A stretch of 64,000 nt of DNA from Mustelus asterias (taxonomy: Eukaryota), in NCBI RefSeq assembly GCF_964213995.1, contig NC_135808.1:7254001-7318000 (forward strand), in the 5' to 3' direction. Of this stretch, positions 1 through 63,913 are shown one piece after another. The stretch's first letter is position 1, and every line of letters starts with the position of its first letter. The translations under genes were made by a program, and so were the position numbers. The notes beneath the pieces are model-generated. The model ran no database searches and had not been told where the DNA came from. It saw only the letters and a program-made list of their open reading frames with translations.

Positions 1-90
1 ATCTGCTTATTATCTCAGTGCTGGCCTTTGTGGTACTCGCTCTCATCCTAACTAAACTAATTTTTATTCTGCAATGCTGTGGACCACCAG
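1..90 (+). CDS. Gene A transmembrane exon (5' end outside window): LLIISVLAFVVLALILTKLIFILQCCGPP
   Basis: Frame starting at nt 3 is a long hydrophobic run followed by CC. It ends at a CAG|GTAATT donor (90|91) in phase 1, typical of IgSF TM exons. Confidence 0.75.
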
Positions 91-277
91 GTAATTATTC
101 TGAATTCAGCCTATTTTACAACAAGGCATGAATGACTATTTGTCTGAAGAATAGCATGGCTGATCTATGGCTTACATTGTTATACACTTACAATGTCTCT
201 GAAATAATCAGCATGATTAATAATTGCAGTAATACCAGTATTTCCATGAATGTTCTTATTTTCCAAAAGGAATTTTT

Positions 278-555
278 AAAGTTAAATGTTTATTTATTAG
301 TCACAAGTAAGTCTCACATTAACACTGCAATGAAGTTACTGCTAAATTCCCCTAGTCGTCACTGTCCGGCGCCTGTTAGGGTCAATGCACTTAACCAGCG
401 CGTTTTTCAGAATGTGGGAGTAAACCCAATCACCCAGAGGAAACCCGTACAGATATAGGGAGACTGTACACAGATAGCCACCCAAGCTGGGAATCGAACC
501 TGGGTCCCTGGCGCTGTGAAGCAGCAGTGCTAACCACTGTGCAACCATGCCGCCC
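278..555 (-). mobile_element. tRNA-derived SINE (HE1-related, AATAAATAAAC-tailed variant)
   Basis: Head GGTTGCACAGTGGTTAGCACTGCTGC...GGTTCGATTCC (A/B boxes); many copies in the window. Confidence 0.8.
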
Positions 556-655
556 ACTAGTTACGTTAAATTTAGAAAATTATTTATAACCTTGCATAAC
601 TTGAAGCTGCAAATATCATGGGTCGTGTCATAGGTATATATTAATTATATAGAAT

Positions 656-1700
656 AAACGGGAGAGTCAGGCCACTCGGCTCAACCAATCCATGCCGCTC
701 TTTATGGTCCATTCAAACCTCCTCCTAACTTTTTAAAATCTAAATGTATCGTTATAACCATTTATAACTTATTCCCTCATTTGCTTGTGTGCATTACCTT
801 ACGTGTGTCTATACGATTCGCATCAACCAGCCCCTGTGGTAACAAGTCCCACATTTTTACCAGCTTTTGGGTAATGAGGTTTCTTCTGAATTCCCTATCG
901 GATTTCTTTGCCACCATATTATATTGATGGCTTCTATTTATATACTTTCCCACAAGAGGAATCATTCTCTTCATATCCACTCCATCAAACTTTTCATAAT
1001 TTTTAAAGTCCTGTTTTCGTTATTAATTCGAACATTATTTTCCAAGAGAGGTGGGAAGGAGCCTCCCGATCTGTTCCTGATACCCATGAGGTTCTGGTAT
1101 CATTCTTGTATATCTTCGCCACATCCTCTCCAGTGTCTCTATATCATTTTCATAACATGCCCACCATAGCTATACTCTGCATTCTAAGTGCAATCTAACC
1201 AAGATTCAATGCAGGTTTAGCATAATTTCCCTACTTCCAATTTTCTCCCCCTAGAAATAACGGCTAGTATTTGACTTGCTTTGCTCATCTGTAGGCAATC
1301 TTTAGTGATTGATGTATTTGCACTGTGAAACCCTTCTGCTCCTGTACCCCACTTAGGCGTGCACCTTACAGGTAATAAATTACCTCCCTATTCTTCCTAC
1401 TAACATGTACCATTTTACCTTTAAATGTTGAAATGTATTTGCCAATTTACTTCCCTTTCTTCAATTTTATTAATATTCCTATGCAATTTGTTGGAGACCT
1501 CCTCAATATTAGCGATCTCCCAAAGTAGGGTCATTTAGAAATTGTGCGATTGATTCGAAAGCCAATTTGTTAATGTAAGCACCGAGCATCAGCGGTCTCA
1601 ACACTGATCCTTGTGAACTACAATTTTATTCATTCTGAATGACTGCTCTTTGATTCTACTCTCTGTTTTCTGGCTTGACGTCAGATAGCTTACCATTCTG
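656..1700 (-). mobile_element. Old CR1-type LINE 3' fragment
   Basis: ORF 777..980 resembles the CR1 ORF2 C-terminus (RRNLITQKLVKMW). Confidence 0.6.
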
Positions 1701-1850
1701 GCACCTATCCCCTAGCTACACATTTTCTGGTCTTGTTCATTAGTCCAGACAGCTTATCAATTCCTTTAGAAAATCCTGATAAATAACATCCATTCCATTG
1801 CCGTTCTTTGCTCTTTCTTTTACCTCCACAGAAAATCAAAGAGAAGACAA

Positions 1851-2335
1851 TAAGACCAAAAGACATAGGAGCAGAATTAGGCCACTCGGCCCATCGAATC
1901 TGCTCCGCCATTTATCATGGCTGATATTTTTCTCTTCCCCATTCTCCTGCCTTTATCCCATAACCCCTGATCCCCTTATTAATCAAGATCCTATGTATCT
2001 CTGTCTTCAAGACACTCAATGACGTGGTCTTCACAGTCTTCTGTGGCAAAGAGTTCCACAGATTCACCACTCTCTGGCTGAAGAAATTCCTCCTCATGTC
2101 TGTTTTAAAGGATCATCCCTTTAGCCTGAGGTTGTGCCCTCTGGTTCTATTTTTTTCTACTAGTGGAAACATCATCCCACGTCCGCTCTATCCAGGCCTC
2201 GCAATATCCTGTAAGTTTTAATAAGATCCCCCCTTATCCTTCTAAACTATAACGAGTAAAGACTCAGAGTCCTCAATTCGTCCTCATACGACAAGCTCTT
2301 CATTCCAGGGATCATTCTTGTGAACCTCCTCTGGA
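1851..2335 (-). mobile_element. CR1/HER1-type LINE 3' end
   Basis: ORF 1915..2097 RRNFFSQRVVNLWNSLP; simple-repeat tail at 1851. Confidence 0.85.
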
Positions 2336-4360
2336 GGTATAACTGACCAGGCAGGGCGTTCTCTTTCCAATCGACGCATGACGACGTTCCTCATATCGCA
2401 CTTGTTTTTATGATCCCTGCTTTGGTAAGGCATCCACGATTTTCCCTGCCGTTCATGTTAAGCAGACGGGTCTATGATTCTGGAATTTCGTCCCATTCGA
2501 GATGTTCATTAGATTCAATAATTCCCTTTTCATTTTAAATAAACGTATTCCATTTTGGACCTCACCATCCAATATCCTGTTTACGTGTTAAATCTCCCTG
2601 CAAAATATTGAAGTAACTAATTATTTTTGTCATCCCTCTATCGTCACCTGTGGTAATATACTGTCTATCCTTCGATTGTACTTTCCTTATCACAACCTTT
2701 ACCTTTTATTCATTAGCTTGTAAATATATTTTGTCAGATATTTATGTTACTTGATAACTTATGTCCGTATGTCTTTTTTGTCCTCCTAATTGTTTTAACA
2801 ATTTTCTCCTCATGACTTTGTGTTTTCTCCGATCATACGCTCCTCGGCTGTACATGTGATTCATGTATGCCTCTTCCCTCACCCTTTCCAAACATGTATA
2901 CCCGTGGAGCTCTGGCATAATATGCCGACCATAACTACACACCATTCGCAGTGCAGTATAACCAGGGTTCAATACAAATAACGCCTTGTACTTGTCTTTT
3001 CTCATTGAAAGAGTCCCATTGATGTTCAGTGTTACCTTTTCTTGTTCCAAAATATCTTTTTTCCTGCTTCTCCATGCCACTATGGTCGCTTGGTAATAAA
3101 GAACTTGAGTGTTGCTAAAAACAAATATGCTGTCGAAGCTTTTTATCTTGCACTCACCACATCAGATTGGCAAGTGTCAAATCGCAAAGGGAACAATATT
3201 TTCTACACTCAGTCTCTCAACGTCAACGATTTTACCCAGTCAACTAACTTGGTTGTTATAACTTTATGTCCTTCTTCATCATTATCTTAAAGCTTATTAT
3301 ATCATTGTAACTATTGCCTAGTTATTCCTCATTTTGATCCTATTAGCTGCTCTGGCTCGTTCCCCATCACTGTTGGTATGTTTTGGTATTTTTACATATA
3401 GGGTTGGAATGATGTCCTGGTTACACTGTCGGAACCTCATTTCCTCATGCCTTTAGCTACCTCTTCCGTCCAATTGATATGAGCTTATTTCATTATTGTT
3501 ATTATTTATTCTTCCTCACTCAATTTCTAAATGTTTCTGCATATTTCTGCTCCCATTGTTTATCGCTATTAGATGAGGCGTAGACTAGACCTATTAGTAT
3601 GACTGATTCATTATTGTCATTCATTTCTCAATTGAATGCTAAAACGTATGTTAAATGTAATAGCATTTCAGTGCATTCAGTACTAATATCTGCCACCGGG
3701 TGCTCAACAGCATGAGAGAGATAGAGTTTCAATTTCCGACACACTATTTTCTCAATAAGGGCCCAACATTGCTTGCAAACACAACATGTGGGCATTGTGT
3801 GTGCATATGTGTCTGTACGGAGAACGGGTTCCTGCGAAGCTTTAAGAGCAGCGAGGGTCTCTCAATGTTTAATCCTGATGACCAACAAGGGCGAATAAAA
3901 TAAAGTTGACGCTATTGTCAATGTAATTCAGGCAAAAAGTAATAACGAAACACACGTGAACATGTTCGGTGTTGCTTGCAATTACTAATTTGAAAAATAT
4001 AGATTTTAAGTAGGAAGAGGAACGGGGTGGAGTAGAGAGGGAACAAGGAACGACAGGAGAGTAGAGAGTACAAGACCGTCCGAACTGCAAGAATGAAAAA
4101 TCGTCACTGCGGCACTACGTTGCATTAGATGTTATTTTTAGAATTCATAAAATTACAGCGTCGTGATCGAAGTTGCAAAATATAAAAAAACTTATGTTGT
4201 TCAGCATAGAAAACCTCATTATTTTAAATTCAAGTAATTTGCTCCAGAGGCCATTTTACTCTTAAATGATCCAATTTTTTGAAATCACATTACAAGATTA
4301 ATAACAGTAAGTTAAGAACAATATGATTTGTAAAGTTAGAAATTAAAATGACCCGGCGAT

Positions 4361-4662
4361 TTGGCACAGTGGTGAGCATTGCTACCTCACAGCGCCAGGG
4401 AACCAGGTTCGGTTCCCGGCTTGGATCACTGTCTGTGCGGTTTGTACATTCTCCTTGTGTCTGTGTGGGTTTCCTCCGGGTGTTCCGGTTTGCTCCCACA
4501 GTCCAAAAATGTGCGGGTTAGTTTGATTGGCCATGCCAAATTAGTATCAGAGGGATTAGCAGGGTAAATGCGTGGGGCAACGGGAATGGGGCGGGTGAGA
4601 TTGTGGTCGGTGCAGACTCGATGGGCCGAATGGTCTCCTTCTGCACTCTAGGGATTCTATGA
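4361..4662 (+). mobile_element. HE1-type SINE
   Basis: tRNA-like head, GGCCATGC-AAATT core, GATTCTATGA tail. Confidence 0.85.
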
Positions 4663-4799
4663 TAATGCAGAAATATATTTCGGTCTGAAATGAGAAATAT
4701 ATTTCGGTCTGAATCTTTAATTTACTATTGACTGTCATATTCGGATTGCGAGTTATGCTCCAGTTTTAAAATCTCTAATCCATTTAACACATTTTATAG

Positions 4800-4831
4800 G
4801 TAAAAGAAATGGAGCCCACACAGTAAAAGAG
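4800..4831 (+). CDS. Gene A cytoplasmic micro-exon, 32 nt, (G)KRNGAHTVKE
   Basis: Acceptor ttttatag| at 4799 and donor GAG|GTATGT at 4831|4832. Phase 1 in and phase 0 out links the TM exon (phase 1) to the phase-0 ITIM exon at 8286. Confidence 0.65.
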
Positions 4832-5162
4832 GTATGTACCATATTTTAATTAAGACTCTTGATTTGCACGATGATAGATCGCCATTACTCTGAAGCTAGA
4901 TTAAGTAATACAATTCTCGATACGGGGAACATGATAGTATAAATGATTAGAATGGAGCGAGACAAATAACATCCAAGGTTCGTGTTTCTTCGCGCTCTGG
5001 CTTTGGTTACGGCATGTAGATTGCAATCGGTAAGGAACATTGAGAGAGATGTGCAACTTATCGTCCAGCCGCATAGCTGGCGAAATTAGTCCACCGTCTG
5101 TTATCAAATGGGTGTGCTAACCCAGTGCTTTCTGCAGGGGGGCGGAGGTAAGAGTGCGATAT

Positions 5163-5595
5163 GGGGAGGCGATGGCCTCCTGGGGTTATCGCTAGACTAT
5201 CCATCCATGAAACTCAACTAATGTTCTGGGGATGATGCTTCGAATCCCGCCACGACAAATCCTGGAATTTCAAACTAGTTTTCAAAAAATCTGGAATTAA
5301 GAACATACTGATGACCATGAAACCATTGTCGATTGCCCATGTGGTTCACTAATGTCCTTCCGGGAAGGAAATCCTTACCTGGTCTGGCCTACATGTGAAT
5401 GTGAAAAATTGAATGTGAAAAATTGAAATGTGAAAAATTACCCCAGTCCAACGCCGGCATCTCCACATCATGACTACATGTGACTCCAGAGCCACAGCAA
5501 TGTGGTTGACTCTCAACTGCCCTCGGGCAACTAGGGATGGAAAATAAATGCTGGCCAGCCAGCGACGCCCATGTCCCACGAATGAATAAAAAAAA
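5163..5595 (+). mobile_element. Second SINE family (AATGAATAAAAA tail) carrying a 75-bp nested insertion
   Basis: Related copies at about 28707-29020 (-) and 62110-62440 (+). Confidence 0.7.
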
Positions 5596-5984
5596 TATGT
5601 AACATCCGGCCTGGTTGTGAATGAACATCTTATCCGATATCACTGAAAAATAGATGACGTCCTTATTCACTGGTCATTATCCCATAAGAATGCAAACGTT
5701 TAAATTCCTAATGCAAATCAATCATCAACTTGACTACTACCTCTCGTGGCTTCCCTTACACACAGAGCCATGAATAACACCAGGTCATGTTTATCAATTC
5801 TGTCTCCAAGATTTGCCCAGCCTCTCTGTTCTCACCTTATCTCTTAATCGAGATACTTTCTTCCTTTTTCACATTCAGCGAATGGCCAGCAAAGTAATTT
5901 TGATGATAATTTGTTCTTTTTTTGCATTGGGAACGTTAATGCGAAATAGACCTTGATTTCAGTGACCCCACATGCTATTTAAAT

Positions 5985-6290
5985 CATAGAATCTACAGTG
6001 CAGAAGGAAGCCATTTGGCCCCTCGAATCTGCACCGACCACAATCCCACCCAGACTATATCCCCATAACCCCATGCATTTGCCCTAACAAATTGTCCCCC
6101 CCCTCCTAAGGGGCAATTTGGCATGGCTAATCCACCTAACCCGCACATCCTTGGAGTGTGGGAGGAAACCGCAGCAAACGCTTGCACACACGGGGAGAAA
6201 GTGCAAACTCCACACGGACAGTGACCCAAGTGGGAATCGAACGCAGATCCCTGGCGCTGTGAGGCATCCGTGCTAACCACTGTGCCACCA
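5985..6290 (-). mobile_element. HE1-type SINE directly abutting the 5S pseudogene
   Basis: Head GGTGGCACAGTGGTTAGCAC starts immediately after the 5S terminal T-run. Confidence 0.85.
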
Positions 6291-6291
6291 A

Positions 6292-6411
6292 AAGCCCACT
6301 GCACCTGGTTTTCCCAGAAAATCTCCCATCCAAGCACTAACTAGGCCTGAGTCTGCTTAGCTTCCGAGATCAGACTAGATTGGGCATTTTCAGTAGCGTA
6401 TGGCTGCAGGC
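6292..6411 (-). pseudogene. Full-length 5S rRNA pseudogene
   Basis: Reverse complement reads GCCTGCAGCCATAC...CTGATCTCGGAAGCTAAGCAG..GGCCTAGTTAGTGCTTGGATGGGAGA...GTGGGCTTTT, a 120-nt 5S copy with scattered substitutions. Confidence 0.9.
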
Positions 6412-6879
6412 TGCATATGTAGACTGCATTCTCTGCGAATCGTCTCCAGCAAGGCATTTCAGCTCCAGCTGTTACTTGTGCCGTGTAGTACAGGGCTGCG
6501 TTGACACTCGCAAAGTTGAGACTCAGTTGGGTCTTTCGGCTCAGCGCTGTGGGCTTAAACTAAACTTCAGTCTCGAAGGTGACAGAGTGCTGACCTAATG
6601 GAACTACAAAATCTTTCGTGCAACCGATTACGAATTCAAATTGAGATTTTCTGTCCTGAACGTAATCGACAGCGCCGAATTGGGGAAACATACTGATCAG
6701 TTTACCAGCTAACTGTGTCCAATTGCCACGATGAACGCCAACTGGTCACTGGAAAACGAAACTCATAATGATTGTATGGCGAAATGTCGCGAAAGATTGC
6801 TTTAAATGTGCTTTTTTTCGGCAATAGCCAGGAAGAGAATCTCCTTTTTATAATATCACTAACTTTTGCATAACCCTAT

Positions 6880-7335
6880 TCATAGAATTGTTACAGTGCA
6901 GAAAGAGGCCCATTCGGCCCATCAGGTCTGCACCAACCCTCCGACAGGACATCTTATTCAGGACGCCCCTCCCCATCCAATCTCTGTAACTCCATTTACT
7001 TACCCCCACGAATCCCCCGAACCTACACACCTTTAGACACAAAGAGGCAATTTAACGTGGCCATCCACGTAACCTGAAGATCTTTGGACAGTAAGGGGCA
7101 ATTTAGCATGGCCAATCCATCTGACCTGCACATCTTTGGACACTAAGGGGCAATTTAGCAGGGCAACTCCAACTAACCAGCATATCTTTGGACTGTGGGA
7201 GGAAACTGGAGCACTGGAGGAAACCCACGAAGACACGGGGAGAACGTGCACACCCCACACAGTCACCCAAGGCTGGAACCGAACCCGGGTCCCTGGTGCT
7301 GTGAGTCAACAGTGCAATCCACTGCAAATATGCTG
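6880..7335 (-). mobile_element. HE1-type SINE with internally triplicated core
   Basis: Three copies of the GGCAATTTA(G/A)C..GGC core unit. Confidence 0.75.
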
Positions 7336-7802
7336 CTGTGAATGAAGCTATGGAAATTATTTTCAGTATATCATGGAACACTGAACACGGCTCACTTGTT
7401 TTAATTTGTTTAGGGGATGTGGGCGTCGCTGTTCGGCCAACATTTATTGCCCATCCCTAACTGCCCTTCAGAAGGTGCTGGTGAGCTGCTCTTTTGAACC
7501 TCGGAAGTCCCTGAGGTGTAGGCACATCCAGAGTGCTGTTAGGGATGGAACCAAATCCGAAATAAATATCAGAATATGCTCACAATGGGTATTTGCACAA
7601 ACCGTCGGGGTTTGAAGCAACATTGGTTTCTCTGCATTGTACTTGCGTTGTGAGAAAGAGACCTTTCAGTCGAAACCAATACCAGTGGCTCAGTAAAATT
7701 AAACATGAGTGATACTGCAATATCGTTTGTATCCTTCACAACCTGGGTGATCAGATCGCCCTTCTTATGAAATTTTGGAAGAAATTATCTGCTTAATTCA
7801 TC

Positions 7803-8274
7803 AGGATGTTGCCTGGTCTCGAGGGTGTTGGAAATGAGAAACGGTTGGATAAACATGGATTATTTTCACTGGAAAGACGGAGGCTGAGGGGAGACCTGAT
7901 AGAGGTCTACAGAATTATGAGCGGTGCAGGCAGGGTGGATAGTCAGAGGCTTTTTCCAAGGGTGGAAGCGTCAATTACAAGGGGGCACAGATTCAGGGGG
8001 AGAGGGGGAAAGTTTTAGGGAGATGTGCAGGGGAGGTTTTCCCGCAGATACTGATGGGTGTCTGGAACGCGCTGCCAGATGAGGTGGTGGAAGCAGGCAC
8101 ATTAGTAACATTTAAGAGGCATCGGGATGGGTACAGGAATAGGGAGGGAATAGAGGGGGACGGACCGAGTAAAGGCAGAAGGGTTCTTCTTCTTTTAGTT
8201 CAGGCATCATGATCGGCGCGGGTTTGAAGGGCCAAAGGGCCTGTTCCTGTGCTGTTCTTTTCATTGTTCTTTGT
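7803..8274 (+). mobile_element. CR1 LINE 3' end
   Basis: ORF 7806..8018 [18 protein letters not shown]; TGTTCT tail. Confidence 0.85.
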
Positions 8275-8285
8275 GCTAATTTAAG

Positions 8286-8570
8286 GAGGAAGACACGTCG
8301 GAAACTCTCGTCTATGCAAAACTGAACATCAGCTGCCCGCCTACTGATAGGACTGTGTATGAGAGGGCGAGGGCGCCGGTTCAGAGTAAAAAGCCAAGAG
8401 AGACTCGGGCGGCGCCACTCCCAGACAGCAGTGGAGAATCTGTTGTGTACGCGTCATTGCGGAAGCCCGGTTACAAGAAGGAATCAATTCGGGTGGAGCC
8501 CGTGCAGACCCGACGAAGGAATGAAGAGCAAACCGTGTACGGGATAGTGAGAGTAGAACATAGAACATAG
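8286..8570 (+). CDS. Gene A last coding exon: inhibitory cytoplasmic tail EEDTSETLVYAKL...TVYERA...SVVYASL...TVYGIVRVEHRT*
   Basis: Acceptor ttctttgtgctaatttaag| at 8285. Open 94-aa frame (extends ORF 8355..8570 upstream) that is GC-rich and non-repetitive. Contains ITIMs LVYAKL and VVYASL and ITSM TVYGIV. Confidence 0.8.
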   Translation, partial: EEDTSETLVYAKLNISCPPTDRTVYERARAPVQSKKPRETRAAPLPDSSGESVVYASLRKPGYKKESIRVEPVQTRRRNEEQTVYGIVRVEHRT

Positions 8571-9832
8571 AACAGTACAGCACAGAACAGGCCCTTCGGC
8601 CCACGATGTTGTGCCGAGCTATATCTGAAAACAAGTTCAAGCTATCCCACTCCCTATCATCCTGGTGCGCTCCATGTGCCTATCCAATAACCGCTTAAAT
8701 GTTCCTAAAGTGTCTGACTCCACTATCACTGCAGGCAATCCATTCCACACTCCAACCACTCTCTGCGTAAAGAACCTACCTCTGATATCCTTCCTATATC
8801 TCCCACCACGAACCCTATAGTTATGCCCCCTTGTAATAACTCCACCCACCCGAGGAAATAGTCTTTGAACGTTCACTCTATCTATCCTCTTCATCATTTT
8901 ATAAACCTCTATTAAGTCTCCCCTCAGCCCGCTCCAGAGAGAACAGCCCTAGCTCCCTCAACCTTTCCTCATAAGACCTACCCTCCAAAGCAGGCAGCAT
9001 CCTGGTAAATCTCCTCTGCACTCTTTCCAGCGCTTCCACATCCTTCTTATAGTGATGTGACCAGAACTGCACACAATATTCCAAATGTGGTCTCACCAAG
9101 GTCCTGTACAATTGCAGCATAACCCCACGGCTCTTAAACTCCAACCCCCCTGTTAATAAAAGCTAACACACTATAGGCCTTCTTCACAGCTCTATCCACT
9201 TGAGTGGCAACCTTTAGAGATCTGTGGATATGGACCCCAAGATCTCTCTGTTCCTCCACAGTTTTCAGAACCCTACCTTTGACCCTGTAATCCACATTTA
9301 AATTAGTCCTACCAAAATGAATCACCTCACATTTATCAGGGTTAAACTCCATTTGCCATTTTTCAGCCCAGCTTTGCAGCCTACAACAGCCCTCCACCTC
9401 ATCCACTACTCCACCAATCTTGGTGTCATCAGCAAATTTACTGATCCACCCTTCAGCCCCTTCCTCTAAGTCATTAATAAAAATCACAAAGAGCAGAGGA
9501 CCAAGCACTGATCCCTGTGGCACTCCGCGAGCAACCTGCCTCCAATCCGAAAATTTTCCATCCACCACCACCCTCTGTCTTCGATCAGATAGCCAGTTAC
9601 CTATCCAATCGGCCAACTTTCCCTCTATCCCACACCTCCTCACTTTCAGCATAAGCCGACCATGGGGGACCTTATCAAACGCCTTACTAAAATCCATGTA
9701 TATGACATCAACTGCCCTACATTCATCAACACACTTAGTTACCTCCTCAAAAAATGCAATCAAATTTGTGAGGCACGACTTGCCCTTCACGAATCCGTGC
9801 TGACTATCCCGGATTAATCCACATCTTTCTAA
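8555..9832 (-). mobile_element. CR1 LINE, 5'-truncated, RT domain with frameshifts
   Basis: ORFs 9134..9844 (QHGF, DFSKAFDKV, GVPQGSVLGP, FADD), 8899..9144 and 8637..8897. (TAGAACA)n tail; AGAGT TSD. Confidence 0.92.
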
Positions 9833-10010
9833 AGAGTGTAGCATTTGTTTTAACCTGTCCTTTCCTCAATGGAAAGAATTCTGTCAATTTTAACCAGGCA
9901 GATATTGCATTTAACAGAAGGTAATTTGATGCTCAATATCCATTGGAAAGAGGAATAAATACCCCATTGGCTTATATTTTACTGACATTGTTACTCTTGC
10001 TTTACACAAT

Positions 10011-13940: not shown

Positions 13941-13949
13941 GTTCAGAAA

Positions 13950-29404: not shown

Positions 29405-29450
29405 ATGAAACCCGCTGACCTGCTGTGGACCTCGATGTTACTATTCTTTA
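29405..29450 (+). CDS. Gene B leader exon MKPADLLWTSMLLFF (exon starts 29391)
   Basis: Acceptor tgatttccag| at 29390, gcaATG at 29405, 15 codons ending hydrophobic, phase-1 donor A|GTAAGA. Joins the V exon in frame. Confidence 0.75.
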
Positions 29451-43891: not shown

Positions 43892-43931
43892 ATGTTTGCC
43901 GATGCTATAATTGGTGTACTGTTGATTGCTG
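43892..43931 (+). CDS. Gene C leader exon MFADAIIGVLLIA (exon starts 43876)
   Basis: Acceptor tctttgccttcacag|, aaaATG, 13 hydrophobic codons, phase-1 donor G|GTAAGT. In frame with the V exon, giving ...LLIA-AVAIA-DFKV. Confidence 0.8.
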
Positions 43932-46478: not shown

Positions 46479-46820
46479 CTGTTGCTATTGCCGACTTCAA
46501 AGTAACTCAAAGCCCAGAGGTTATCGAAGTAATAGAAGGAGAGGAGTTTCAAATCTCCTGTACATTTACTGCGTCTAAAGTGTCATCGGTCTTTGGATTC
46601 AGCTGGTACAAGCAAACATCAGATCGTGAAAACAGTTTTGTTTCGAACACATCTGAAGGATGTTTTGGTCGGGTTTTGCGGAAACGTGAACAATATTTAA
46701 ACACCGAACAAATTACAGTCATAAAGGCAAATCGGAATGATTCCGGCATATATTATTGTGAAGTGGATTTGCTGGCAGTTGGCAGAGGAACCGGAATGGG
46801 CACACGGGTAACTGTTAAAG
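46479..46820 (+). CDS. NCR3: Gene C Ig V-set exon with germline-joined J segment, NKp30/NCR3-like
   Basis: KVTQSP..EG..FQISC...FSWYKQ...GRV...NDSGIYYCEVDLLAVGRGTGMGTRVTVK. The end resembles the NKp30 motif CRVEVLGLGVGTGNGTRLVVE. Acceptor ttttacag| and donor AAG|GTACGT, phase 1-1. Symbol denotes family resemblance. Confidence 0.88.
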
Positions 46821-46919
46821 GTACGTTTCTATGTGCTACCATCTGCCTTTCTTTACAATTATTCTTTTCAATAACAAATCAAACTAATTATTCCTACACT
46901 ATCCACTCTAAAATTATCC

Positions 46920-47495
46920 CATAGAATCCCATAGAATCATTACAGTGCAGAACGAGGCCATTCGGCCCATCGAGTCTGCACCGGCCAGAGTCCCACCCAG
47001 GCCCTATTCCTGTAACCCCATGCATTTACCCTAGCTAATCCCCCTGATACTAAGGGTTAATTTAGCATGGCCAATCCACCTAACCTGCACATATTTGGAC
47101 TGTGGGAGGAAACTGGAGCACCCGGAGGAAACCCACACAGACACGGGGAGATTATGCAAACTCCACACAGATAGTGACCCGAGGCCGGAATTGAAACCGG
47201 GTTCCTGGCATTGCGAGGCAGCAGCTCAAACTACTGTGCCGCCGTGCTGTCTGTGTGGAGACTGCACATTCTCCCGGTGTCTGGGTGGGTTTCCTCCGGG
47301 TGCTCTGATTTCATCCCATAGTCCAGAAGATGTGCGCGTTAGGTGGATTGGCCATGCTAAATTGCCCCTTAGTGTCGGGGGATTAGCTAGGGTAAACGCA
47401 TGAGGTCACGCGGATAGGGCCTGGGTGGGATTGTGGTCGATGCAGACGCAATGGGCCGAATGGCCTCCTACTACACTGTAGGGAATCTATGATCC
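46920..47495. mobile_element. Head-to-head HE1-type SINE pair just downstream of the gene C V exon
   Basis: - copy at about 46920-47245, + copy at about 47247-47495. Confidence 0.8.
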
Positions 47496-50382: not shown

Positions 50383-51505
50383 CTGCGGTTGCTGGAACTG
50401 GAAACAAAATAGAAAATGCAAGAAAATCGCACTTGGTCTGACGGCATCTGTGGAGCCAGAATAGAGCCTGGCCGGGATTTTATGACCTCGCTCGGCGAGG
50501 CTCGTAAAGTCCCGCCCGAGGCAACGGAGAATTCCGTTCTGCTAGCCTTACCCGCCCCAATTCCGGAGCGGGCGAGATGGTTTCGAGTCTGGATGACCAT
50601 TCGTCAGAGCTGAGAGCAAAGAAAACCAGGCGAGATTTATACTATGAAGGTGGGGAAGGTAGTTGGACGGAGCAAATGTAAGTGGTGAAATATGCTCAAA
50701 GTTTCCATCAAGTAATCGAAATGTATGAATGGCAGAACTAGGCACAGATTGTTAAAGACCACTTGAGGAATATGGAAGTTGCCCTGAAGGCGGAGAGGGA
50801 GGTGGGGGAGGGGTGGGGGGTGTTGGAGATAAGGTGGGGAGCGGGATTTGAGAAATTGAAAAATAGAAGTACGAATGAAAGCTGATAAAAATGGGTGAGT
50901 GAGATGAAAAGAAAAAATGAAATAAAATAAATGGAAATGGGGTGGATGTGAAGGAGGAAGTTCATGCCTTGAAGTTGTTGAACTCAATCTTCAGTCCGGA
51001 AGGCAATAAAGTGCCCAATCGGAAGATGAGCTGCTGTTCCTCCAGTTTGCGTTGGGGTTCGCTAGAACATTGCAAATGGCCGAGGATGGACACGTGGACA
51101 TGAGAGCAGGGTGGTGTGCTGAAATAGCAAGCGACAGGAAGGTCTGGGTCCTGCTTGCAGATGGACCAAAGATGTTCTACAAAGCGTTCACGCAGTCCGT
51201 GTTTGATCTCTCTAATGTAGACTAGACAGGAGAGTACATCGAAGGCACCAAACGCAGACTGTGAGATCTCTTTAATCCTGTTCTGCCATTTACACATTCC
51301 AATCCCTTCATGGACACTTTTAGCACCTTTCTCAGCCTTTGTCATCATCATTTACATTTCCTTTGTCCAACTACAGCCCCCCTCCCCCCATCCTCATAGT
51401 ATACATCTGGTGTGATTTTCATTGCTCCCCTTTCAGCTCTGATGAATGGATATCCAGACTCAAAACGTTGACCTGCTGATATTTTCCAGCATTTTCTGTT
51501 TCCGG
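50383..51505 (-). mobile_element. Penelope-like element: GIY-YIG C-terminus with inverted pLTR
   Basis: ORF 50962..51351 (VYIREIKHGLRERFVEHL...RKLEEQQLIFRLGTL..GLKIEF). Inverted hammerhead-like motifs at 50579-50612 (-) and 51434-51470 (+). Confidence 0.75.
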
Positions 51506-51804
51506 TCAAAAGTCCAATGGCAACAGGGAAGAAACTGTTCTTGAGTCTGCTGTACGTGATCTTAGACTTTTTAAAATCTTTCTCCCAACGGAAGAAGGTG
51601 GAAGAGAATATGTTCGGGGTGTCTGGGTTCCTTAATTGTGCTGGCTGCTTTTCCGAGGCATCCAAATTTGAATACAATAGCTATCAACAACCTGCGGTGC
51701 ACCAATACGCACCAAATTGGTAACACAATTCGTGACTATTTCGATAAGTTAATCGAGTGAAATGAATAAAAGAATTGCTATATTTGACTGTTCGTTCCCT
51801 ACAG

Positions 51805-51998
51805 GCCGGGAGGAGCACGACAACACTGGATGTTCGCTGCAAAGGCAGCTGATTGCGATGGGAGTGAGACTTGCAGTGTTTGCTGTGTTAATCATGATAA
51901 CGATATCTCTCGTATATTGCTGCGAGTTTCGAGGTTCTCCTACTACAGAGCGTGAAGAAGCTACCACACCTGGCAGGCATCCCATGGTAAAAAGTTAA
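51805..51998 (+). CDS. Gene C stalk/TM/short-tail exon with Arg in TM (LIAMGVRLAVFAVLIMITISLVYCC)
   Basis: Acceptor ttcgttccctacag| in phase 1, open to TAA at 51998. AATAAA at 52515-52520. Confidence 0.85.
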
Positions 51999-54019
51999 AC
52001 TGAACCGATTGACACTTTGGACAAATTGTATTTGCAGTTCATTATAAAGTGGCAGCAGAAGTGATTTCTTTTTTAGTTTATTTATCAGCGTCACAAGTAG
52101 GTTCACCACTGCATTGAAGCCACTGTGAAAATCCCCTAGTCGCCACACTCCAGTGCCTGGTCGGGTACACTGAGGGCGAATTTAGCTTAGCTAATGCCCC
52201 TAACCAACGCGTCTTTCGGACTGTGGGAGGCAACTGGAATACCCAGAAAAACCCACGCAGATACGGGGAGGACGTGAAAGCTCCACACAGGCAGTGACCC
52301 AAGCCAGGAATCGAACTCGGGACCTTGGCTGTGTGAGGCAGCAGTGCTAACCACTGTGCCACCCTGCTGCCCATGGTTCTAGCTGTTAAATGCAAACGTG
52401 GAGAAGCATGTACAGTCTGTCCCAACGTCACTTGTGTGCGGGCACGATCATATGCCCTTCATTATCTCTCCCGCCACCACCCCCCCAATCCCTTTTATAT
52501 TTAAGTGGTTTACTAATAAAACATTCTATTCTGTGTTATTGTCGATAGTCCATTAGATGGCGCAGTCATTGCCAATTTCATATGTCTCGGGTTCCCATTT
52601 TAAGTAATTTTATCTCCTAATTGCTGGAAAAAAAACTGACATCGATACATGTTAACGCTCTTACACCATGTTGTATTTTCCCCCCAGCGAAGACGGGAAA
52701 AGATGACAAGAGTCATACAATGACAATCGTATAAGGAACAGAAAACCACATGAAGGAACAAGCGGAAGATCTATCACTCATTATAAGCGAACATTTGTTG
52801 TATTTTCTCCTTCATTATCATTAAATGTAAATATGTGCTATAAAATATACAATGTATGCAGCTCTGTAGTCCAAATTCCGATGCTAGCCTGCAATACAGG
52901 AAAGAGGTATGCTTCATTGAGGGACATTCAGTTTCATAGAAAAAGCAAGGAGAATTCAAACTTAGCAAAGCATGACTCTTCATCGCAGAGAATGAAACAT
53001 GGATTTATTTTCGATTTTTCTTGTCCTTTTCTCTAAGTATTTGTTGTCGACTTTTCTGATGAGCATTGAACTTACTCCGCTTTGCACGCTCGCTCTGCAA
53101 GTGAAGAAACCTTATATGAGGTTCGACAGAGTCTATGAGCAACAGGAGTCCTATCGTTAGCCAACAATGAGATTTAACACCTTTTGAAGCAAATGGTGTC
53201 TTGTAGGTAACCTTTTATGTATTGCCACCATGTTTCCTGATGCGATTTGATACGGGATCAGCACCTTGTAATAGTTGTGCTTGTCGCTCCCTACCCCTTG
53301 TCATTTTGACTTATCAAAGACATGCTGACATGGTGGCATGGTGGCACGATGGTCATCCGAATTTGGGTGACAGTCTGGAGTTTGCACGCTATCCTCCCAC
53401 AGTCCAAAAATGTGGAGGTTAGGTTGATTGGTCATGCTAAATTGCCCCTTAATGTACATAGATGTGGAGGTTAGGTGGATTGGTAAATACTCGGGTTTAT
53501 AGGGATTGGGCCTTGGTGAGATGCTCTTTCAGAGAGTCGATGCAGAGGGGCCGAATACTGTAGGGTTTCTATGATTCTAAAGATCTGCTAACCCATATGC
53601 ACACAGATATAAACTGTAGCTTAAATCAAAACTAAACAACATGAAACTGATTATAACTGGGCCATATGCAAAATTCTAATTGTAACGAATACTGCCACAT
53701 GGAGCTTTTTAAAGTAAATCCGTTTAAAGTGAAATGACCGAGTATTGTCACAGACTCTCTCATTACAATCAAAGACTGAAACCTGAATGAATTCAATCTG
53801 GCAATGTAGGAACTATGGACTTGAAAATAAAGCACATAGTTCAGATCAACCTTTGCTTCTATTCGATAAAGTAACGATGTCTGCACGTCACGAGGTAACT
53901 TTTACTATCTTAGACATACTTTGTAATGTTTGTCTGAGCTTTGTTGTGGATTATGCTTAATTCATTTTTTCTTCGCCATATATTGGAAGCGATACGTTTA
54001 TTCAATAAGTCAATCATCT

Positions 54020-56030
54020 ATAAGAACATAAGAAATAGGAGCAGGAGTAGGCCATCTAGCCCCTCGAGCCTGCCCCGCCATTCAATAAGATCATGGCTGA
54101 TCTGACGTGGATCAGTACCACTTACCCGCCTGATCTCCATAACCCTTAATTCCCTTACCGATCAGGAATCCATCCATCCGCGCTTTAAACATATTCAGCG
54201 AGGTAGCCTCCACCACCTCAGTGGGCAGAGAATTCCAGAGATTCACCACCCTCTGGGAGAAGAAGTTCCTCCTCAACTCTGTCTTAAACCGACCCCCCTT
54301 TATTTTGAGGCTGTGTCCTCTAGTTTTAACTTCCTTACTAAGTGGAAAGAATCACTCCGCCTCCACCCTATCCAGCCCCCGCATTATCTTATAAGTCTCC
54401 ATAAGATCCCCCCTCATCCTTCTAAACTCCACCGAGTACAAACCCAATCTCCTCAGTCTCTCCTCATAATCCAAACCCCTCATCTCCGGTATCAACCTGG
54501 TGAACCTTCTCTGCACTCCCTCCAATGCCAATATATCCCTCCTCATATAAGGGGACCAATACTGCACACAGTATTCCAGCTGCGGCCTCACCAATGCCCT
54601 GTACAGGTGCATCAAGACATCCCTGCTTTTATATTCTATCCCCCTCGCAATATAGGCCAACATCCCATTTGCCTTCTTGATCACCTGTTGTACCTGCAGA
54701 CTGGGCTTTTGCGTCTCATGCACAAGGACCCCCAGGTCCCTTTGCACGGTAGCATGTTTTAATTTGTTTCCATTGAGATAGTAATCCCATTTGTTATTAT
54801 TTCCTCCAAAGTGTATAACCTCGCATTTATCAACGTTATACTCCATTTGCCATATCCTCGCCCACTCACTCAGCCTGTCCAAATCTCTCTGCAGATCTTC
54901 TCCGTCCTCCACACGATTCACTTTTCCACTTATCTTTGTGTCGTCTGCAAACTTCGTTACCCTACACTCCGTCCCCTCCTCCAGATCATCTATATAAATG
55001 GTAAATAGTTGCGGCCCGAGTACCGATCCCTGCGGCACGCCACTAGTTACCTTCCTCCAACCGGAAAAACACCCATTTATTCCGACTCTTTGCTTCCTGT
55101 CGGATAGCCAGTCCCCAATCCACTTTAACACACTACCCCCAACTCCATGTGCCCTAATCTTCTTCAGCAGCCTTTTATGGGGGACCTTATCAAACGCCTT
55201 TTGGAAATCCAAAAACACCGCATCCACCGGTTCTCCTCCATCAACCGCCCTCGTCACATCTTCATAAAAATCCAACATGTTCGTCAAGCACGACTTTCCC
55301 CTCATGAATCCATGCTGCGTCTGATTGATCGAACCATTTCTATCCAGATGCCCTGCTATCTCCTCTTTAATAATGGATTCCAGCATTTTCCCTACTACAG
55401 ACGTTAAGCTGACCGGCCTATAGTTACCCGCCTTTTGTCTCCTTCCTTTTTTAAACAGCGGCGTAACATTAGCCGTTTTCCAATCAACCGGCACTACCCC
55501 AGAATGCAACGAGTTTTGATAAATAATCACTAACGCATCCACTATTACCTCTGACATTTCTTTCAATACCCTGGGATGCATTCCATCCGGACCCGGGGAC
55601 TTGTCCACCTTCAGTCCCATTAGTCTACCCAGCACTGCCTCTCTGGTAACATTAATTGTATTAAGTATTTCTCCTGCTGCCAACCCTCTATCGTTAATAT
55701 TTGGCAAACTATTTGTGTCCTCCACCGTGAAGACCGACACAAAAAACTTATTTAAAGACTCAGCCATATCCTCATTTCCCACTATTAACTCCCCCCTCTC
55801 GTCCTCCAAGGGTCCAACATTCACTCTAGCCACTCTATTCCTTTTTATATATTTATAAAAACTTTTACTATCATTTTTTATATTAATTGCTAGCCTAGCT
55901 TCATAGTCTATCCTTCCTTTCTTTATCGCTTTCTTAGTCTCTCTTTGTTGTTTCTTAAATTTTTCCCAATCACTTGTTTCTCCACTATTTTTGGCCACTC
56001 TGTACGCAGCTGTTTTTATTTTAATACTCT
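54020..56030 (-). mobile_element. Young CR1 LINE, uninterrupted 548-aa ORF2 segment (RT), truncated by the gap
   Basis: ORF 54352..55998 with KSPGPDG, NYRPVSLTS, DFQKAFDKV, GVPQGSVLGP, FADD; TAAGAACA tail. Confidence 0.95.
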
Positions 56031-56482
56031 NNNNNNNNNNNNNNNNNNNNNNNNNNNNNNNNNNNNNNNNNNNNNNNNNNNNNNNNNNNNNNNNNNNNNN
56101 NNNNNNNNNNNNNNNNNNNNNNNNNNNNNNNNNNNNNNNNNNNNNNNNNNNNNNNNNNNNNNNNNNNNNNNNNNNNNNNNNNNNNNNNNNNNNNNNNNNN
56201 NNNNNNNNNNNNNNNNNNNNNNNNNNNNNNNNNNNNNNNNNNNNNNNNNNNNNNNNNNNNNNNNNNNNNNNNNNNNNNNNNNNNNNNNNNNNNNNNNNNN
56301 NNNNNNNNNNNNNNNNNNNNNNNNNNNNNNNNNNNNNNNNNNNNNNNNNNNNNNNNNNNNNNNNNNNNNNNNNNNNNNNNNNNNNNNNNNNNNNNNNNNN
56401 NNNNNNNNNNNNNNNNNNNNNNNNNNNNNNNNNNNNNNNNNNNNNNNNNNNNNNNNNNNNNNNNNNNNNNNNNNNNNNNNNN
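56031..56482. other. Assembly gap (452 N)
   Basis: N run. Confidence 1.
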
Positions 56483-59400: not shown

Positions 59401-59536
59401 AAACAAATGATCATATGGACAAAATCAGCAATGAAGTGATTGTGAAAATCCGCTAGTCGCCATCCTCCAGAGCCTGTTCGAGTATACTGAGGGACAATTT
59501 AGCATGGCCAATGCACCTAACCAGTGTCAGTGTCAT

Positions 59537-60367: not shown

Positions 60368-63300
60368 GTTATACTGTCAGTGTCATTTATTGCTTGGAAT
60401 AATCTTAATCGCTCTAGGGGATCCCGATCCTATTCTATTCTGTTCATTGATACTCCATATGGAGTTATTGTGCCATGTTGTCTGCACTTGCCGTGAATTT
60501 CAGTTCCGAATCCTCCTTTCTTGTTCTTCAAGAAAATGCTGACACGCCTCTTTAATTGCTGTAAGACGTCATGCTTCCCGTATTTGTACCACAAGTAATT
60601 CTTTTACAGTACAGGGGGAAAATATTTGCAGAAGTCGACTGTACATTTCTCTGTCAAGTTACAGTAAGTAGATTTTTATCGTTCTGTTCCTTAGTAAAGC
60701 AGAAGTCATGTTCAGAATTTAACTGCATGTCTTTTTACTGTTCTTATCGTTAAAATCGATTTTAAAATGGGGGGAAATGGAAGGTAAGGCGAGCATTTGT
60801 TGCCCTTCGGTAATTTCCGTTGGAGTGAGAGGCTCACGAGGCCATGTCAAAGGGAACTTAAGAGTCAACCAAAACCCGAAGGGTTTCGGCCAACATGTAG
60901 ATCAGAACGGGTAAAGATGGTGGATTTTCTTCCCGAACGGACATTAGTGATGTAGATGGATTTTAACGACAATACGACGATAGACTCATGGTCATCATCA
61001 CTGAAAAAACATTACATTCCAGAATGTTCGAATTAATTTATTGAATATAAGCTGTAACTATGTTCCCAGAGCATTACAATTAAAGCAATACACTGCGGAT
61101 GCTGAAAATATAAAATAGAAACGGAAAGTGCAGGAAAAAATTCAGCGGGTGTGGCATCATCTGTGGAGAGAGAAAAATACAGTTAACGTATCGAGTCTGT
61201 GTGCCTCCTCTTCAGAGCATTAGCTGCTTTCTCCGAAATGTTTTGTCTAGTCACCTTCATACTCAGCCACTTCCTTAATTGATGTGTTTCTACTGTTCGT
61301 GCTTTCATTTAATACACTGTTAATTAGTGTTTTAAGTCAACGCTGAATGCTCATGCGTATATGAGCAGATTAATCCTACCACCCTCTCAAAGGCATTTAG
61401 GAGTGGGTAAGAAATATTGGTCTTGCCAGAGTCACCCATATCCCGTAAATGAATAGATGTACGCGCACACACATACATTTATGCAGCAGTTTTGACAGGG
61501 ACTGTTCGGGTTCCGTTCTGTATTGACTTTTACTGCACCTCGGTTCACCAATAACTCGAATCAGAAATTCGTCACCCTATTTCTAAGTCTGCCCATAACC
61601 CAAAGTGATCCTTTAGCTCTACGTGGCCATCTCATCATTTCCTTGTCTCTAATTTGCACCACACTTCGCCCCCAACTCAGCACGAGGACACAGTTGTTGG
61701 TGTCTTTCTCCTTGGCTTTAAATTCCCTGTCTGAAACACTTCCGCCTTTCTAGCGTTGTGACTCTCTTTTAGACCTCTGTTAAAACATGTCTTACAAGAG
61801 TTCCGGGTTTCGCGTCCATCTCACCAAGCTTCTCCAATGCGCCCTTGGACTCGAACCTACAATAAAGGAAATAAACGACTATCTGAGACTCAGAACACAC
61901 GGAATTACATAAGTTCACTTATATACCACATGCCGGATAGTCGGGCCTACTGAAGTCGCTAGAATCGAATATTCGCCACAAGTTATGGTTTCGAAACCTT
62001 TCACCGCTGAATGAGAAGGTGATGGGTTGAAGTCCTACTTGGCCACAAAATTCAAGGCAAATACTCTAAGGCAGGAACGTGTGTCGGGGGTAGGGGGGGG
62101 GGGGGGGAAGTGGCGTAGTGGTATCGTCACTCGACTCGTAACTCAGGATGATATTTGTGGGCCCGGGCTCAGATCCCACCACGTTAGATGGTGAAACTTG
62201 AATTCACTAATCTGGAATTAAAACTCTAATATTGATCGAGAAACCAATATCCATTGTCGCCACAACCCATCTGGCTCACTAATGTCCTTTAGGGAAGGAA
62301 ATCTGCCATCCTTACCCGGTCTGGCCTACATGTCACTCCAGACCCAGAGCAATGTTGTTGACTCTCAAATGTCCCCTGAAATTCTGGACAGTTAGGGAAG
62401 GACAATGAATGCTGGCCCAGCCAGCGATGTCCACATCAAAAAAGGTGCCCTTTTTTTTAAATGTGCGGCTAATTCGCACTTTCAGGTGAATGTGAGGAAT
62501 GCTAAAAAGTTATCGGAAGAATAACAAGGGGAACAATTTCTGCTGTCCTGACGCTAGATCTGGATGTTGAAAACACCGCTCTATATGAAATGTTCGTCCA
62601 GTTAACTAAGCATAAGAACACGGTTAGCACAGTGGCACAGTGGTTTGCACTGCTGCCTCACAGCGCTAGGAATCCAGGTTCAATTCTGGCCTTGGGTGAC
62701 TGAGTGGAGCGTGCGTGCTTCTGAGTAGGTTTCCGTTCGGTGCTCCGGGTTCCTCCCACAGTCCAAAGATGTGCAGGTTAGGTGGATTCGCCATGGTAAA
62801 TGTGTGGAGTTACGGTGATAGGCGGGGGAGAGTTCCTTGGTAGGATACCCTGTGAGAGAAGCAGTGTATGCTGAATGGGCCTCCTTCTGCTCTGTAGGCA
62901 TTCTATGATAAGATCCAAGAGCAGAAATACACTATTCAGTCATTCGAAACTGCTCCACCATTCAATAAATCGTGTCTAATCTTGATAGGGATCTCAACTC
63001 CACAGAGAACATAGAACAGTACAGCACAGTACAGACCCTTCTGCCCACGATGTTGTGCCGAACCTTTTCCGAAGCCAAGATCAATCTATCCCACTCCCTA
63101 TCATTGCCGACCTTCCCTCATAGCTCTTGACTCCCTTATCTATCTAAAACCCCTCTAACTGTGTCTTGATTGGATTCAACGACCCAGCCTCCACTGTGCT
63201 TTGGCAAGCGAATTTCATATACTTTGGGGGGGGGGCTGCGATGCTCAGTATCTCCGTCTCAAACATCACTTTATCCTTAAACTGCGTCCTTTAGTACTAG

Positions 63301-63430
63301 TTTCTCCCAGAAGTGAAAACATCTTCCCGTTTTGTGGCCTATTATGGTGCCTCAGGATCGTATATGTTTCAAGAAGATCAACTCTCATTCTCCACTACGT
63401 GTAGGCTCAAACTGTCCATCCTTATAGATA

Positions 63431-63760
63431 CGGCACGGTAGCACAGTGGTTAGTACTGCTGCTTCACAGTTCCAGGGACCTGGGTTCGATTCCCGGCTTG
63501 GCTCACTGTCTGTGTGGAGTTTGCACATTCTCCTCGTGTCTGCATGGGTTTCCTCCGGGTGCTCCGGTTTCCTCCCACAGTCCAAAAATGTGCGGGTTAG
63601 GTTGATTGGCCATGCTAAAATTGCCCCTTCCTGTACTGAGATGCGTAGGTTAGAGGGATTAGCGGGTAAATGTGTGGGGGTAGGGCCTGGGTGGGATTGT
63701 GGTCGGTGCAGACACGGTGGGCCAAATGGCCTCTTTCTGTGCTGTAGGGATTCTATGATT
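63431..63760 (+). mobile_element. HE1-type SINE
   Basis: Canonical head, core and tail. Further copies at about 32018-32332, 33820-34108, 37960-38260, 42160-42448, 45461-45777, 49165-49398, 52075-52365, 58393-58690 and 62620-62908. Confidence 0.85.
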
Positions 63761-63778
63761 ATACTACTGAGCATTCAG

Positions 63779-63913
63779 GTCGAGAATCTGATAATACAAT
63801 ATCATGAAAAACATATGGGTATAAAGTTAAGTTTGCGTGCTCTTTTCATCATCCTAACTGTGATGGAAATCCTAGGAATGGCAGCTTCTTGTCTAAATAT
63901 GTACATATTATGA
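63779..63913 (+). pseudogene. Disrupted paralogous TM exon (GRESDNTIS* / MGIKLSLRALFIILTVMEILGMAASC)
   Basis: Phase-1 reading starts GRESDNT (gene C has GREEHDNT) and hits TGA. A second frame gives MGIKL (B and C have MGVKL, MGVRL) plus a hydrophobic run. A SINE sits about 18 nt before the acceptor. Confidence 0.55.

Follow-up and report, generated by a model that had tools for sequence, protein, structure and literature searches.

Does a retroelement-rich region of a shark genome that holds three receptor genes represent a cluster of the NKp30 (NCR3) family, with inhibitory and activating members side by side? The region is a stretch of 64,000 nucleotides (nt) from Mustelus asterias (assembly GCF_964213995.1, contig NC_135808.1, positions 7,254,001 to 7,318,000 of the forward strand), which was analysed whole and is referred to below as the window. 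The three genes, here called A, B, and C, are all on the + strand, interspersed with repeats, and lie within 52 kb. Based on sequence comparison, we consider it about 70% probable that the window is a piece of a large, transposon-rich elasmobranch NKp30-family cluster, in which gene B is the NKp30 orthologue, gene A an inhibitory receptor, and gene C a mosaic. NKp30 has been described as a non-rearranging gene of the major histocompatibility complex (MHC) lineage that is present in cartilaginous fish, and its VJ-type domain, in which variable (V) and joining (J) parts are united, has been used in arguments on the origin of antigen receptors (PMC10751288). The receptor has a basic residue in its transmembrane (TM) span and a short tail without a signalling motif of its own, and this TM Arg pairs with an Asp of CD3zeta or FcRgamma, according to PMC6514059.

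Profile hidden Markov models (HMMs) built from homologues were scanned, exon by exon and with exons not joined, over 1679 open stretches (≥25 codons, all six frames), with one span of the window left out. The V-domain model matched two stretches, which are the V exons of genes B and C (E = 1.5e-49 and 1e-43, respectively; next best, 0.69). The TM-module model likewise matched two, the last exons of the same genes (E of ~1e-25, with 4e-25 for gene B; next, 0.013), and a model of tails with immunoreceptor tyrosine-based inhibition motifs (ITIMs) matched one, the last exon of gene A (E = 8.7e-34; next, 1.4). Given this sharp separation from the next-best stretches, the array is more than a product of chance. 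A preliminary description of the window had proposed a co-oriented array of one gene with ITIMs and an immunoreceptor tyrosine-based switch motif (ITSM) beside two intact genes, each with one VJ exon, a basic TM residue, and a motif-free tail, and this composition was borne out, the basic residue being Lys in gene B and Arg in gene C. The germline joining that it described also holds, as V and a J-like strand occupy, in both genes, a single germline exon that ends in a splice donor (from YYC to FGPGT in gene B and from YYC to GMGT in gene C). The FGxGT pattern is confined to gene B; in gene C and its homologues the motif reads GxGTxVTV, the leading Phe being absent. Both exons match the Pfam V-set family (E = 9.5e-19 for gene B and 1.8e-11 for gene C). 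The splice sites of the two genes are canonical, and every predicted junction is in phase 1 (Table 1). A rearranging V segment of the immunoglobulin (Ig) or T-cell receptor (TCR) type was considered and rejected, since V and J are contiguous in one exon and the next exon is the TM exon.

Gene B reads as the shark orthologue of NKp30. It has a single V-type domain, a basic TM residue with a short motif-free tail, and kinship with an accepted NCR3, the last judged in a tree without Ig, TCR, SIRP, or NITR references. Its V domain is 70.9% identical to that of Chiloscyllium P0010 (a protein of 173 amino acids [aa] labelled "cd79b"), 67.5% identical to nurse-shark P0011, which was deposited as NCR3/NKp30 (QTT61904.1), and 66% identical to a two-domain Pristiophorus protein. 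Gene B and the pair P0010/P0011 form a clade, (B, (P0010, P0011)), with support of 99/97 in a tree that contained 31 V domains. The TM exon is 53-56% identical to the TM regions of P0010 and P0011 (56% over 32 residues for P0011). Outside the sharks, the V domain shows 32% identity over 114 aa to NCR3 of the lizard Podarcis (pairwise E = 9e-16), and human NKp30 chains in the PDB match it across the entire domain (E = 1.3e-9). The TM Lys (codon 31401-31403) is the seventh of ~22 hydrophobic residues, in the outer third of the span, and the tail of ~30 aa contains no ITIM, ITSM, or ITAM (immunoreceptor tyrosine-based activation motif). The 3' untranslated region (3'UTR) probably runs to the ATTAAA at 32379.

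Two other models of gene B were rejected. For a second Ig domain, as in P0009 and P0163, the V HMM found no exon in intron 1 or elsewhere, with a small doubt left by the assembly gap in intron 2. No reading frame spans this gap, and its stated length is an estimate; P0010 covers the V exon (residues 13-132) and the last exon (129-173) of gene B with no residues missing, and hence a hidden exon in the gap is unlikely. As for CD79b, the name given to P0010, the pattern YxxL/I-x6-9-YxxL/I is absent from P0010 and from the tails of genes B and C.

Gene A is represented in the window by the end of its TM exon and by its last exon, its ectodomain exons being upstream. The core of the membrane span has no basic residue, and the tail is of the form ITIM-ITIM-ITSM (LVYAKL, VVYASL, and TVYGIV), as first read from the open stretch 8280-8567 (+), with the ITSM 30 residues past the second ITIM and two extra tyrosines outside the motifs. 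The TM region is 64% identical over 28 aa to Heterodontus P0045 and 35% identical over 31 aa to Carcharodon and Cetorhinus homologues, and in the tail the identity is 46% to P0045 (over 89 aa), 35% to Chiloscyllium P0042, and 34% to Mustelus P0001. P0045, whose name is NCR3-like, contains one VJ domain and an uncharged TM that ends in ..CCGPR, and its tail finishes with TVYAAV. Hence, both parts of gene A match single-VJ "NCR3-like" proteins of horn and bamboo sharks, and orthology now supports its membership in the family, left unproven at the outset. A second V lineage is made up of P0045 and P0042 together with ray proteins, some of which have a Lys TM module (support 98/97), and the ectodomain of gene A would, by orthology, be a VJ domain of this lineage. 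Because the TM exon ends in a phase-1 donor and the last exon is entered in phase 0, at least one short exon of 3n+2 bases is expected between 90 and 8285; homologues possess such a middle exon (..CQ / ERT.. / GDTS..).

The last exon of gene A is flanked by two inverted copies of a repeat (8229-8278 and 8554-8602; 50 nt, 84% identical). Homology to the repeat begins at 8554/8555, 14 bases ahead of the stop codon, and the last four codons and the stop of gene A are therefore transposon sequence. P0045 and P0042 terminate right after the ITSM.

Gene C, as reconstructed, is a mosaic, with the leader and V exon of a third V lineage and a last exon that copies the NKp30-type module in diverged form, Arg replacing Lys. 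The best match of its V domain, at 70% identity, is Mustelus P0001, an ITIM protein of another species, and in the 31-row tree the domain is nested in an ITIM lineage (97/94) as the sister of P0001 (98/99). A topology that forces it together with the NKp30-proper V domains was rejected by the approximately unbiased (AU) test (p-AU = 0.00067), although the groups for the AU tests were named after the tree had been seen, which weakens them. Eight proteins with this type of V domain were found among 12 candidates; one is truncated, and the other seven combine an uncharged TM with one to three ITIMs. The last exon aligns with that of gene B (51761-52051 with 31289-31594), the DNA being 70.7% identical over 307 nt. 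A second shared block (52779-52933 and 32338-32489) is 72% identical, and ATTAAA stands at the same offset in both genes; the 3'UTR of gene C probably runs to its copy at 52820. The 5' parts of the two genes show no DNA similarity. Within the shared module, the identical nt amount to 59/66 in the TM core, 35/50 at the intron end, 44/59 in the 3'UTR, 25/44 in the stalk, and 50/90 in the tail. The TM core is thus far better kept than the flanking non-coding DNA, a pattern consistent with purifying selection acting on the membrane span in genes B and C alike. The tail of gene C (~25 aa) has no ITIM, ITSM, or ITAM. A catshark protein, S. torazame P0026 (a RefSeq NCR3-like model), also joins a lineage-3 V domain (57% identical to that of gene C) to a Lys TM module.

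Further observations concern the same two genes. Gene C has extra Cys residues in the stalk (51805-51850, ..NTGCSL..) and in the V domain (46650-46670, ..EGCFG..), both of which are missing from gene B and most homologues; they could form a disulfide-linked dimer or an added intrachain bond. A stretch reading SR-D/G-SP ... REE is common to the tails of gene B (31449-31538), gene C (51915-51995), and Heterodontus P0163. Between the two conserved 3'UTR blocks, each gene carries a short interspersed element (SINE; 32004-32334 in gene B and 52075-52374 in gene C), and the opposite orientations of the two copies go with what look like two independent insertions at nearly the same place.

Table 1. 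Receptor exons, signalling motifs, assembly gaps, and a possible relic in the window (positions are those of the window)
Feature	Position	Strand	Details
Gene A, 3' part of TM exon	1-89	+	ends ..CCGPP; phase-1 donor GT at 90
Gene A, last (cytoplasmic) exon	8286-8570	+	acceptor AG 8284-8285; stop TAG 8568-8570; open stretch 8280-8567
Gene A, ITIM 1 LVYAKL	8307-8324	+	aligned with VVYADL of P0001
Gene A, ITIM 2 VVYASL	8442-8459	+	aligned with VVYAAV of P0001
Gene A, ITSM TVYGIV	8532-8549	+	aligned with VVYGMV of P0001 and TVYAAV of P0045
Gene B, exon 1, start codon and split leader	29405-29450	+	phase-1 donor; 12/14 residues match the P0009 leader
Gene B, exon 2, rest of leader and single VJ-type V-set domain	29960-30313	+	YYC ... 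FGPGTILTV; donor GTAAGT
Assembly gap	30547-30716		in gene B intron 2; preceded by (TG)n and (GATA/GACA)n repeats
Gene B, exon 3, coding part	31339-31541	+	short stalk, TM with Lys, tail of ~30 aa; stop TAA 31539-31541
Gene C, exon 1, start codon and split leader	43892-43931	+	donor GTAAGT; leader shared at 9/13 residues with S. canicula P0003 and P0008
Gene C, exon 2, single VJ-type V-set domain	46479-46820	+	YYC ... GMGTRVTV; donor GTACGT
Gene C, exon 3, coding part	51805-51998	+	stalk with Cys, TM with Arg (codon 51867-51869), tail of ~25 aa; stop TAA 51996-51998
Assembly gap	56031-56482		within a long interspersed element (LINE), 4 kb beyond the gene C stop; flanked by a reverse-transcriptase ORF (54352-55998, - strand); belongs to no receptor gene
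Possible decayed TM-module relic (..MGIKLS..FIILT..)	63815-63913	+	TM-module HMM 11.9 bits, E = 0.013 over 1679 stretches

The V domains of genes B and C, together with that presumed for gene A, belong to three lineages that are 30-40% identical, with 30% identity between genes B and C. The 31 V domains of the careful tree were picked by hand from a quick tree of 98 rows. The latter held the two window exons and, out of 336 domain hits, 96 that covered ≥98 HMM positions, scored ≥45 bits, and came from proteins of at most 330 aa. Lineages 2 and 3 join each other (89/87) and adjoin the NKp30-proper lineage. A whole-protein profile search, in which the profile covered all 173 positions of P0010, returned 300 relatives at E ≤1e-3, 54 at ≤1e-10, and 7 at ≤1e-30, with P0011 as the best match. 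Among 30 relatives checked for their names, 12 were NCR3 or NCR3-like, 15 uncharacterized, two SIRP-beta-like, and one turtle-like, and the NCR3 and NCR3-like names span rays, sharks, bichir, lungfish, frogs, axolotl, and lizards. A second profile search (A3) found 18 proteins at E ≤1e-5 among 8000 scored candidates, most of them known already. All close matches are from elasmobranchs, the nearest being galeomorph sharks. Human NKp30 is the best non-rearranging single-domain PDB match for gene B, for gene C, and for the lineage-3 profile; together with the grouping of gene B with nurse-shark NCR3, this upholds NKp30 as the right family for the array.

Signalling parts are distributed across these lineages in a mixed manner. 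By a heuristic of our own for TM and ITIM classes, 168 proteins comprise 60 without a TM, 31 with a charged TM, 54 with at least one ITIM, and 23 with a plain TM. On the V tree, forms with a charged TM are scattered among ITIM forms, and the scored rows show at least eight changes; this fits repeated re-assortment of V and signalling exons. Among the relatives in bony fish, one 90%-identity cluster of Polypterus senegalus proteins (P0030/P0162) groups an NCR3-like protein with a "PRC2A protein, partial", which suggests that an NKp30-like gene was fused, in the gene model, to PRRC2A, the MHC class III neighbour of NKp30 in mammals.

Several points weigh against the interpretation of the window as part of an NKp30-family cluster. 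All splice junctions of genes A, B, and C are predicted ones. The model of gene A is incomplete, with the V exon beyond the window, and the middle exon required by its phases was not located within 90-8285: a pattern search gave 0 matches, 253 AG..GT candidates of the right phase yielded two that passed filters (neither convincing), and tblastn with the corresponding parts of P0045 and P0042 reached a best E of 0.26. The basic TM residue of gene B is Lys, not Arg, and its TM region shows no pairwise similarity to that of lizard NCR3. The kinship of lineages 2 and 3 to NKp30 rests on a deep node with weak support (62/39) and on automatic names, and in the PDB comparison NKp30, at ~41 bits, does not outscore shark V-NAR or nanobody domains. 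Moreover, the V domain of gene C does not group with that of the catshark P0026 (p-AU = 0.0055), so that either the mosaic arose more than once or the V regions were homogenised later.

Some of these points would also be expected if gene B alone were related to NKp30, with genes A and C belonging to separate VJ-type Ig families nearer SIRP, NITR, or CD300-like receptors and "NCR3-like" being a naming artefact. The low identity between the V domains of genes B and C agrees with such a division, as does the lower identity of gene C to lizard NCR3 (23%, versus 32% for gene B). The node with support of 62/39 is the one that unites the three shark lineages apart from the bony-vertebrate rows, and some members of the family are named SIRP-beta-like, turtle-like, pIgR-like, or cd79b. 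A protein atlas returned only generic V-set clusters (CD22-like, nectin, PD-1, and others) and does not discriminate. Nonetheless, we regard a division of this kind as unlikely. Lineages 2 and 3 are joined and lie adjacent to the NKp30-proper lineage, the activating members of all three lineages share a homologous TM module (..SL.WQL..G.KL.VF..), and NKp30 is the best non-rearranging PDB match even for gene C and the lineage-3 profile. Family genes are also found on one contig in Chiloscyllium and on one contig in Heterodontus.

The composition of gene C invites the further explanation that it is not one gene, but the remnant of an ITIM gene (leader and V exon, 43892-46820) that happens to stand 5 kb from an orphan duplicate of an NKp30 TM exon (51805). 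The junction 46820/51805 is a predicted one across a 5-kb intron crowded with SINEs, and the phase agreement of its exons is weak evidence given that all Ig-superfamily exons are in phase 1; seven of the eight proteins with this type of V domain being ITIM forms would also suit a remnant. This is quite unlikely in our view, because each of the three exons has an open frame and canonical splice sites, the poly(A) signal is preserved, and the TM core matches gene B at 59/66 nt compared with 70-75% in the flanking non-coding DNA, which points to constraint on the core. Neither tblastn nor the HMM scan found a relic of an uncharged TM or ITIM tail in 46850-51804, and the catshark P0026 joins the same two kinds of module. 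Equally, the basic TM residues of genes B and C might recruit no ITAM adaptor, the products being non-signalling decoys or co-receptors. Stalk and tail have diverged between the two genes faster than the neighbouring non-coding DNA (25/44 and 50/90 nt), and the tail stretch shared by genes B and C and Heterodontus P0163 could have a role of its own. We consider decoys or co-receptors very unlikely, as a basic residue occurs at the same place in an otherwise strongly conserved span from rays to sharks, and also in frog and lizard NCR3 models, and the equivalent Arg of mammalian NKp30 binds CD3zeta or FcRgamma (PMC6514059).

If the NKp30-family reading of the cluster is right, each of its genes would, once spliced and expressed as predicted, yield a type I membrane protein whose single V domain is of the VJ type and joined in the germline. 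As in mammalian NKp30, the Lys of gene B would pair with a transmembrane Asp of an ITAM adaptor (of the CD3zeta or FcRgamma type, or DAP12), and binding of a ligand would lead to activation. The phosphorylated tyrosines of gene A would be predicted to recruit phosphatases of the SHP-1/SHP-2 type; an ITIM-x30-ITSM ending is of the kind bound by SHP-1 and SHP-2. In gene C, the copied module comprises ~50 nt of intron, the TM region, and the 3'UTR through the poly(A) signal, and the gene would be the activating partner of lineage-3 inhibitory genes outside the window. The traits of a paired family are seen in the clustering of related genes, gene A with ITIMs and an ITSM and genes B and C with a charged TM and a short tail. 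The preliminary description went further and took gene A for the inhibitory counterpart of genes B and C, for which the ectodomains provide no match. Since the V domains of genes B and C share only 30% identity and gene A is predicted to use a third lineage, the window would hold members of three receptor sets and probably no matched inhibitory/activating pair. The V domain of gene C is 70% identical to that of the ITIM protein P0001 of another species.

Among known systems, NKp30/NCR3 itself is like gene B in having one V-type domain with a germline J-like G strand, a short stalk, a basic TM residue, and a short motif-free tail. It differs in having Arg in mammals where gene B has Lys, and in being a single mammalian gene where the window has several family members; mammalian NCR3 has neither an ITIM/ITSM tail nor a foreign V domain, which are carried by the neighbours A and C. 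The contrast with mammals drawn at the outset therefore stands in that mammalian NCR3 lacks an inhibitory counterpart, but the arrangement is not new for non-mammals, since ITIM-bearing NCR3-like proteins are already annotated. In a different taxon, Ohta et al. reportedly described, in 2006, MHC-linked V-type genes of Xenopus (XMIV), some with ITIMs; this XMIV/NKp30 family is said to represent an expansion of NKp30-like VJ genes in a cold-blooded vertebrate. Annotated axolotl and lungfish NCR3-like proteins carry ITIMs, in agreement with this picture.

The clustering of ITIM-tailed members beside members with a charged TM and a short tail is shared with the NITR, KIR, LILR, SIRP, and CD300 families. 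In families of the NITR/KIR type, new activating forms are made by re-assorting ectodomain and signalling exons, and gene C is alike in this respect. Classical pairs have near-identical ectodomains, whereas the V lineages of the window are 30-40% identical, and the single VJ-type V domain found here contrasts with the C2/I-type domains, or V plus I, of NITR/KIR-type families. No NITR was among the named matches of the family, which does not address kinship to NITR. In its tail, gene A resembles PD-1, BTLA, PECAM-1, and Siglec receptors, having likewise an ITIM followed by an ITSM 30 residues on, and this spacing suits the tandem SH2 domains of SHP-1 and SHP-2. It differs from them by a further upstream ITIM and two more tyrosines, and the kinship is limited to the motifs. 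Rearranging receptors and the UrIg/UrIg2 genes resemble genes B and C in their J-like strand, and the V domains of the latter match Ig and TCR V domains no less well than NKp30. In genes B and C, however, a single exon carries V and J without a break and is not followed by a C1 domain, whereas UrIg genes are of VJ-C1 type (PMC12227049).

The remainder of the window (44% G+C, with the two runs of N given in Table 1) consists in bulk of retroelement debris, and SINE copies by the dozen dominate its self-comparison. Open reading frames (ORFs) with RVT_1 matches are located on the - strand at 54355-55998 (Pfam E = 2.4e-33) and 9137-9844 (E = 2.4e-24). An ORF of 231 aa in such debris (17780-18472, - strand) matches ALKBH8_N (Pfam E = 3.7e-11); it is probably a domain carried by a LINE family, not a host gene. 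The relic exons reported in the preliminary description were not recovered. When seven sub-regions were searched by tblastn with the TM and tail segments of seven ITIM homologues, no match other than gene A fell below E 0.09, and the HMM scans yielded one marginal TM-like stretch (63815-63910) at the very end of the span that the preliminary description covered (1-63913). Its score of 11.9 bits was reached by 0 of 2000 shuffles. It has Arg and Glu inside the hydrophobic run, shows no collinear DNA similarity to the exons of genes B and C, and may be the decayed last exon of a further NKp30-type gene. Another candidate, 36344-36421 (..VTYCAI..), had an E of 1.3 and was treated as a chance match.

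Flajnik et al. are said to have reported in 2012 that sharks have NKp30, that the copy numbers of NKp30 and B7H6 co-vary, and that no other natural killer (NK) cell receptor has a known ancestry as deep as that of NKp30. Public annotations of sharks, rays, lungfish, and axolotl already include ITIM-bearing NCR3-like genes. A literature search, with supplements and the primary shark NKp30 papers outside it, found no description of ITIM-bearing NKp30-like genes in cartilaginous fish. The known picture is unchanged, given that homologues are publicly annotated, several of them as NCR3-like. What the window adds is the exon-level anatomy of a shark NKp30 orthologue and two neighbours, in a family that has ITIM-tailed and charged-TM members. 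Gene C is the most useful result, being a clear case of an activating gene assembled from an inhibitory-lineage V exon and an NKp30 signalling exon, and the three genes offer concrete material for questions of adaptor pairing, phosphatase recruitment, and ligands in cartilaginous fish.

A broader proposal, which we offer tentatively and at somewhat below even odds, is that the elasmobranch NKp30-family complex is very large, fast-evolving, and retroelement-rich, extends over hundreds of kilobases with at least three V lineages, and serves as the main NK-type paired-receptor system, like KIR, Ly49, and NITR elsewhere. Activating receptors would have been made in it repeatedly by grafting the NKp30 TM/3'UTR exon onto inhibitory V exons, as in gene C and, independently, in P0026. 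If this is true, the logic of pairing activating with inhibitory receptors, and perhaps co-evolution with a B7H6-like ligand, would date to the oldest jawed vertebrates, and such pairing would have started from one NK receptor that is conserved from sharks to humans.

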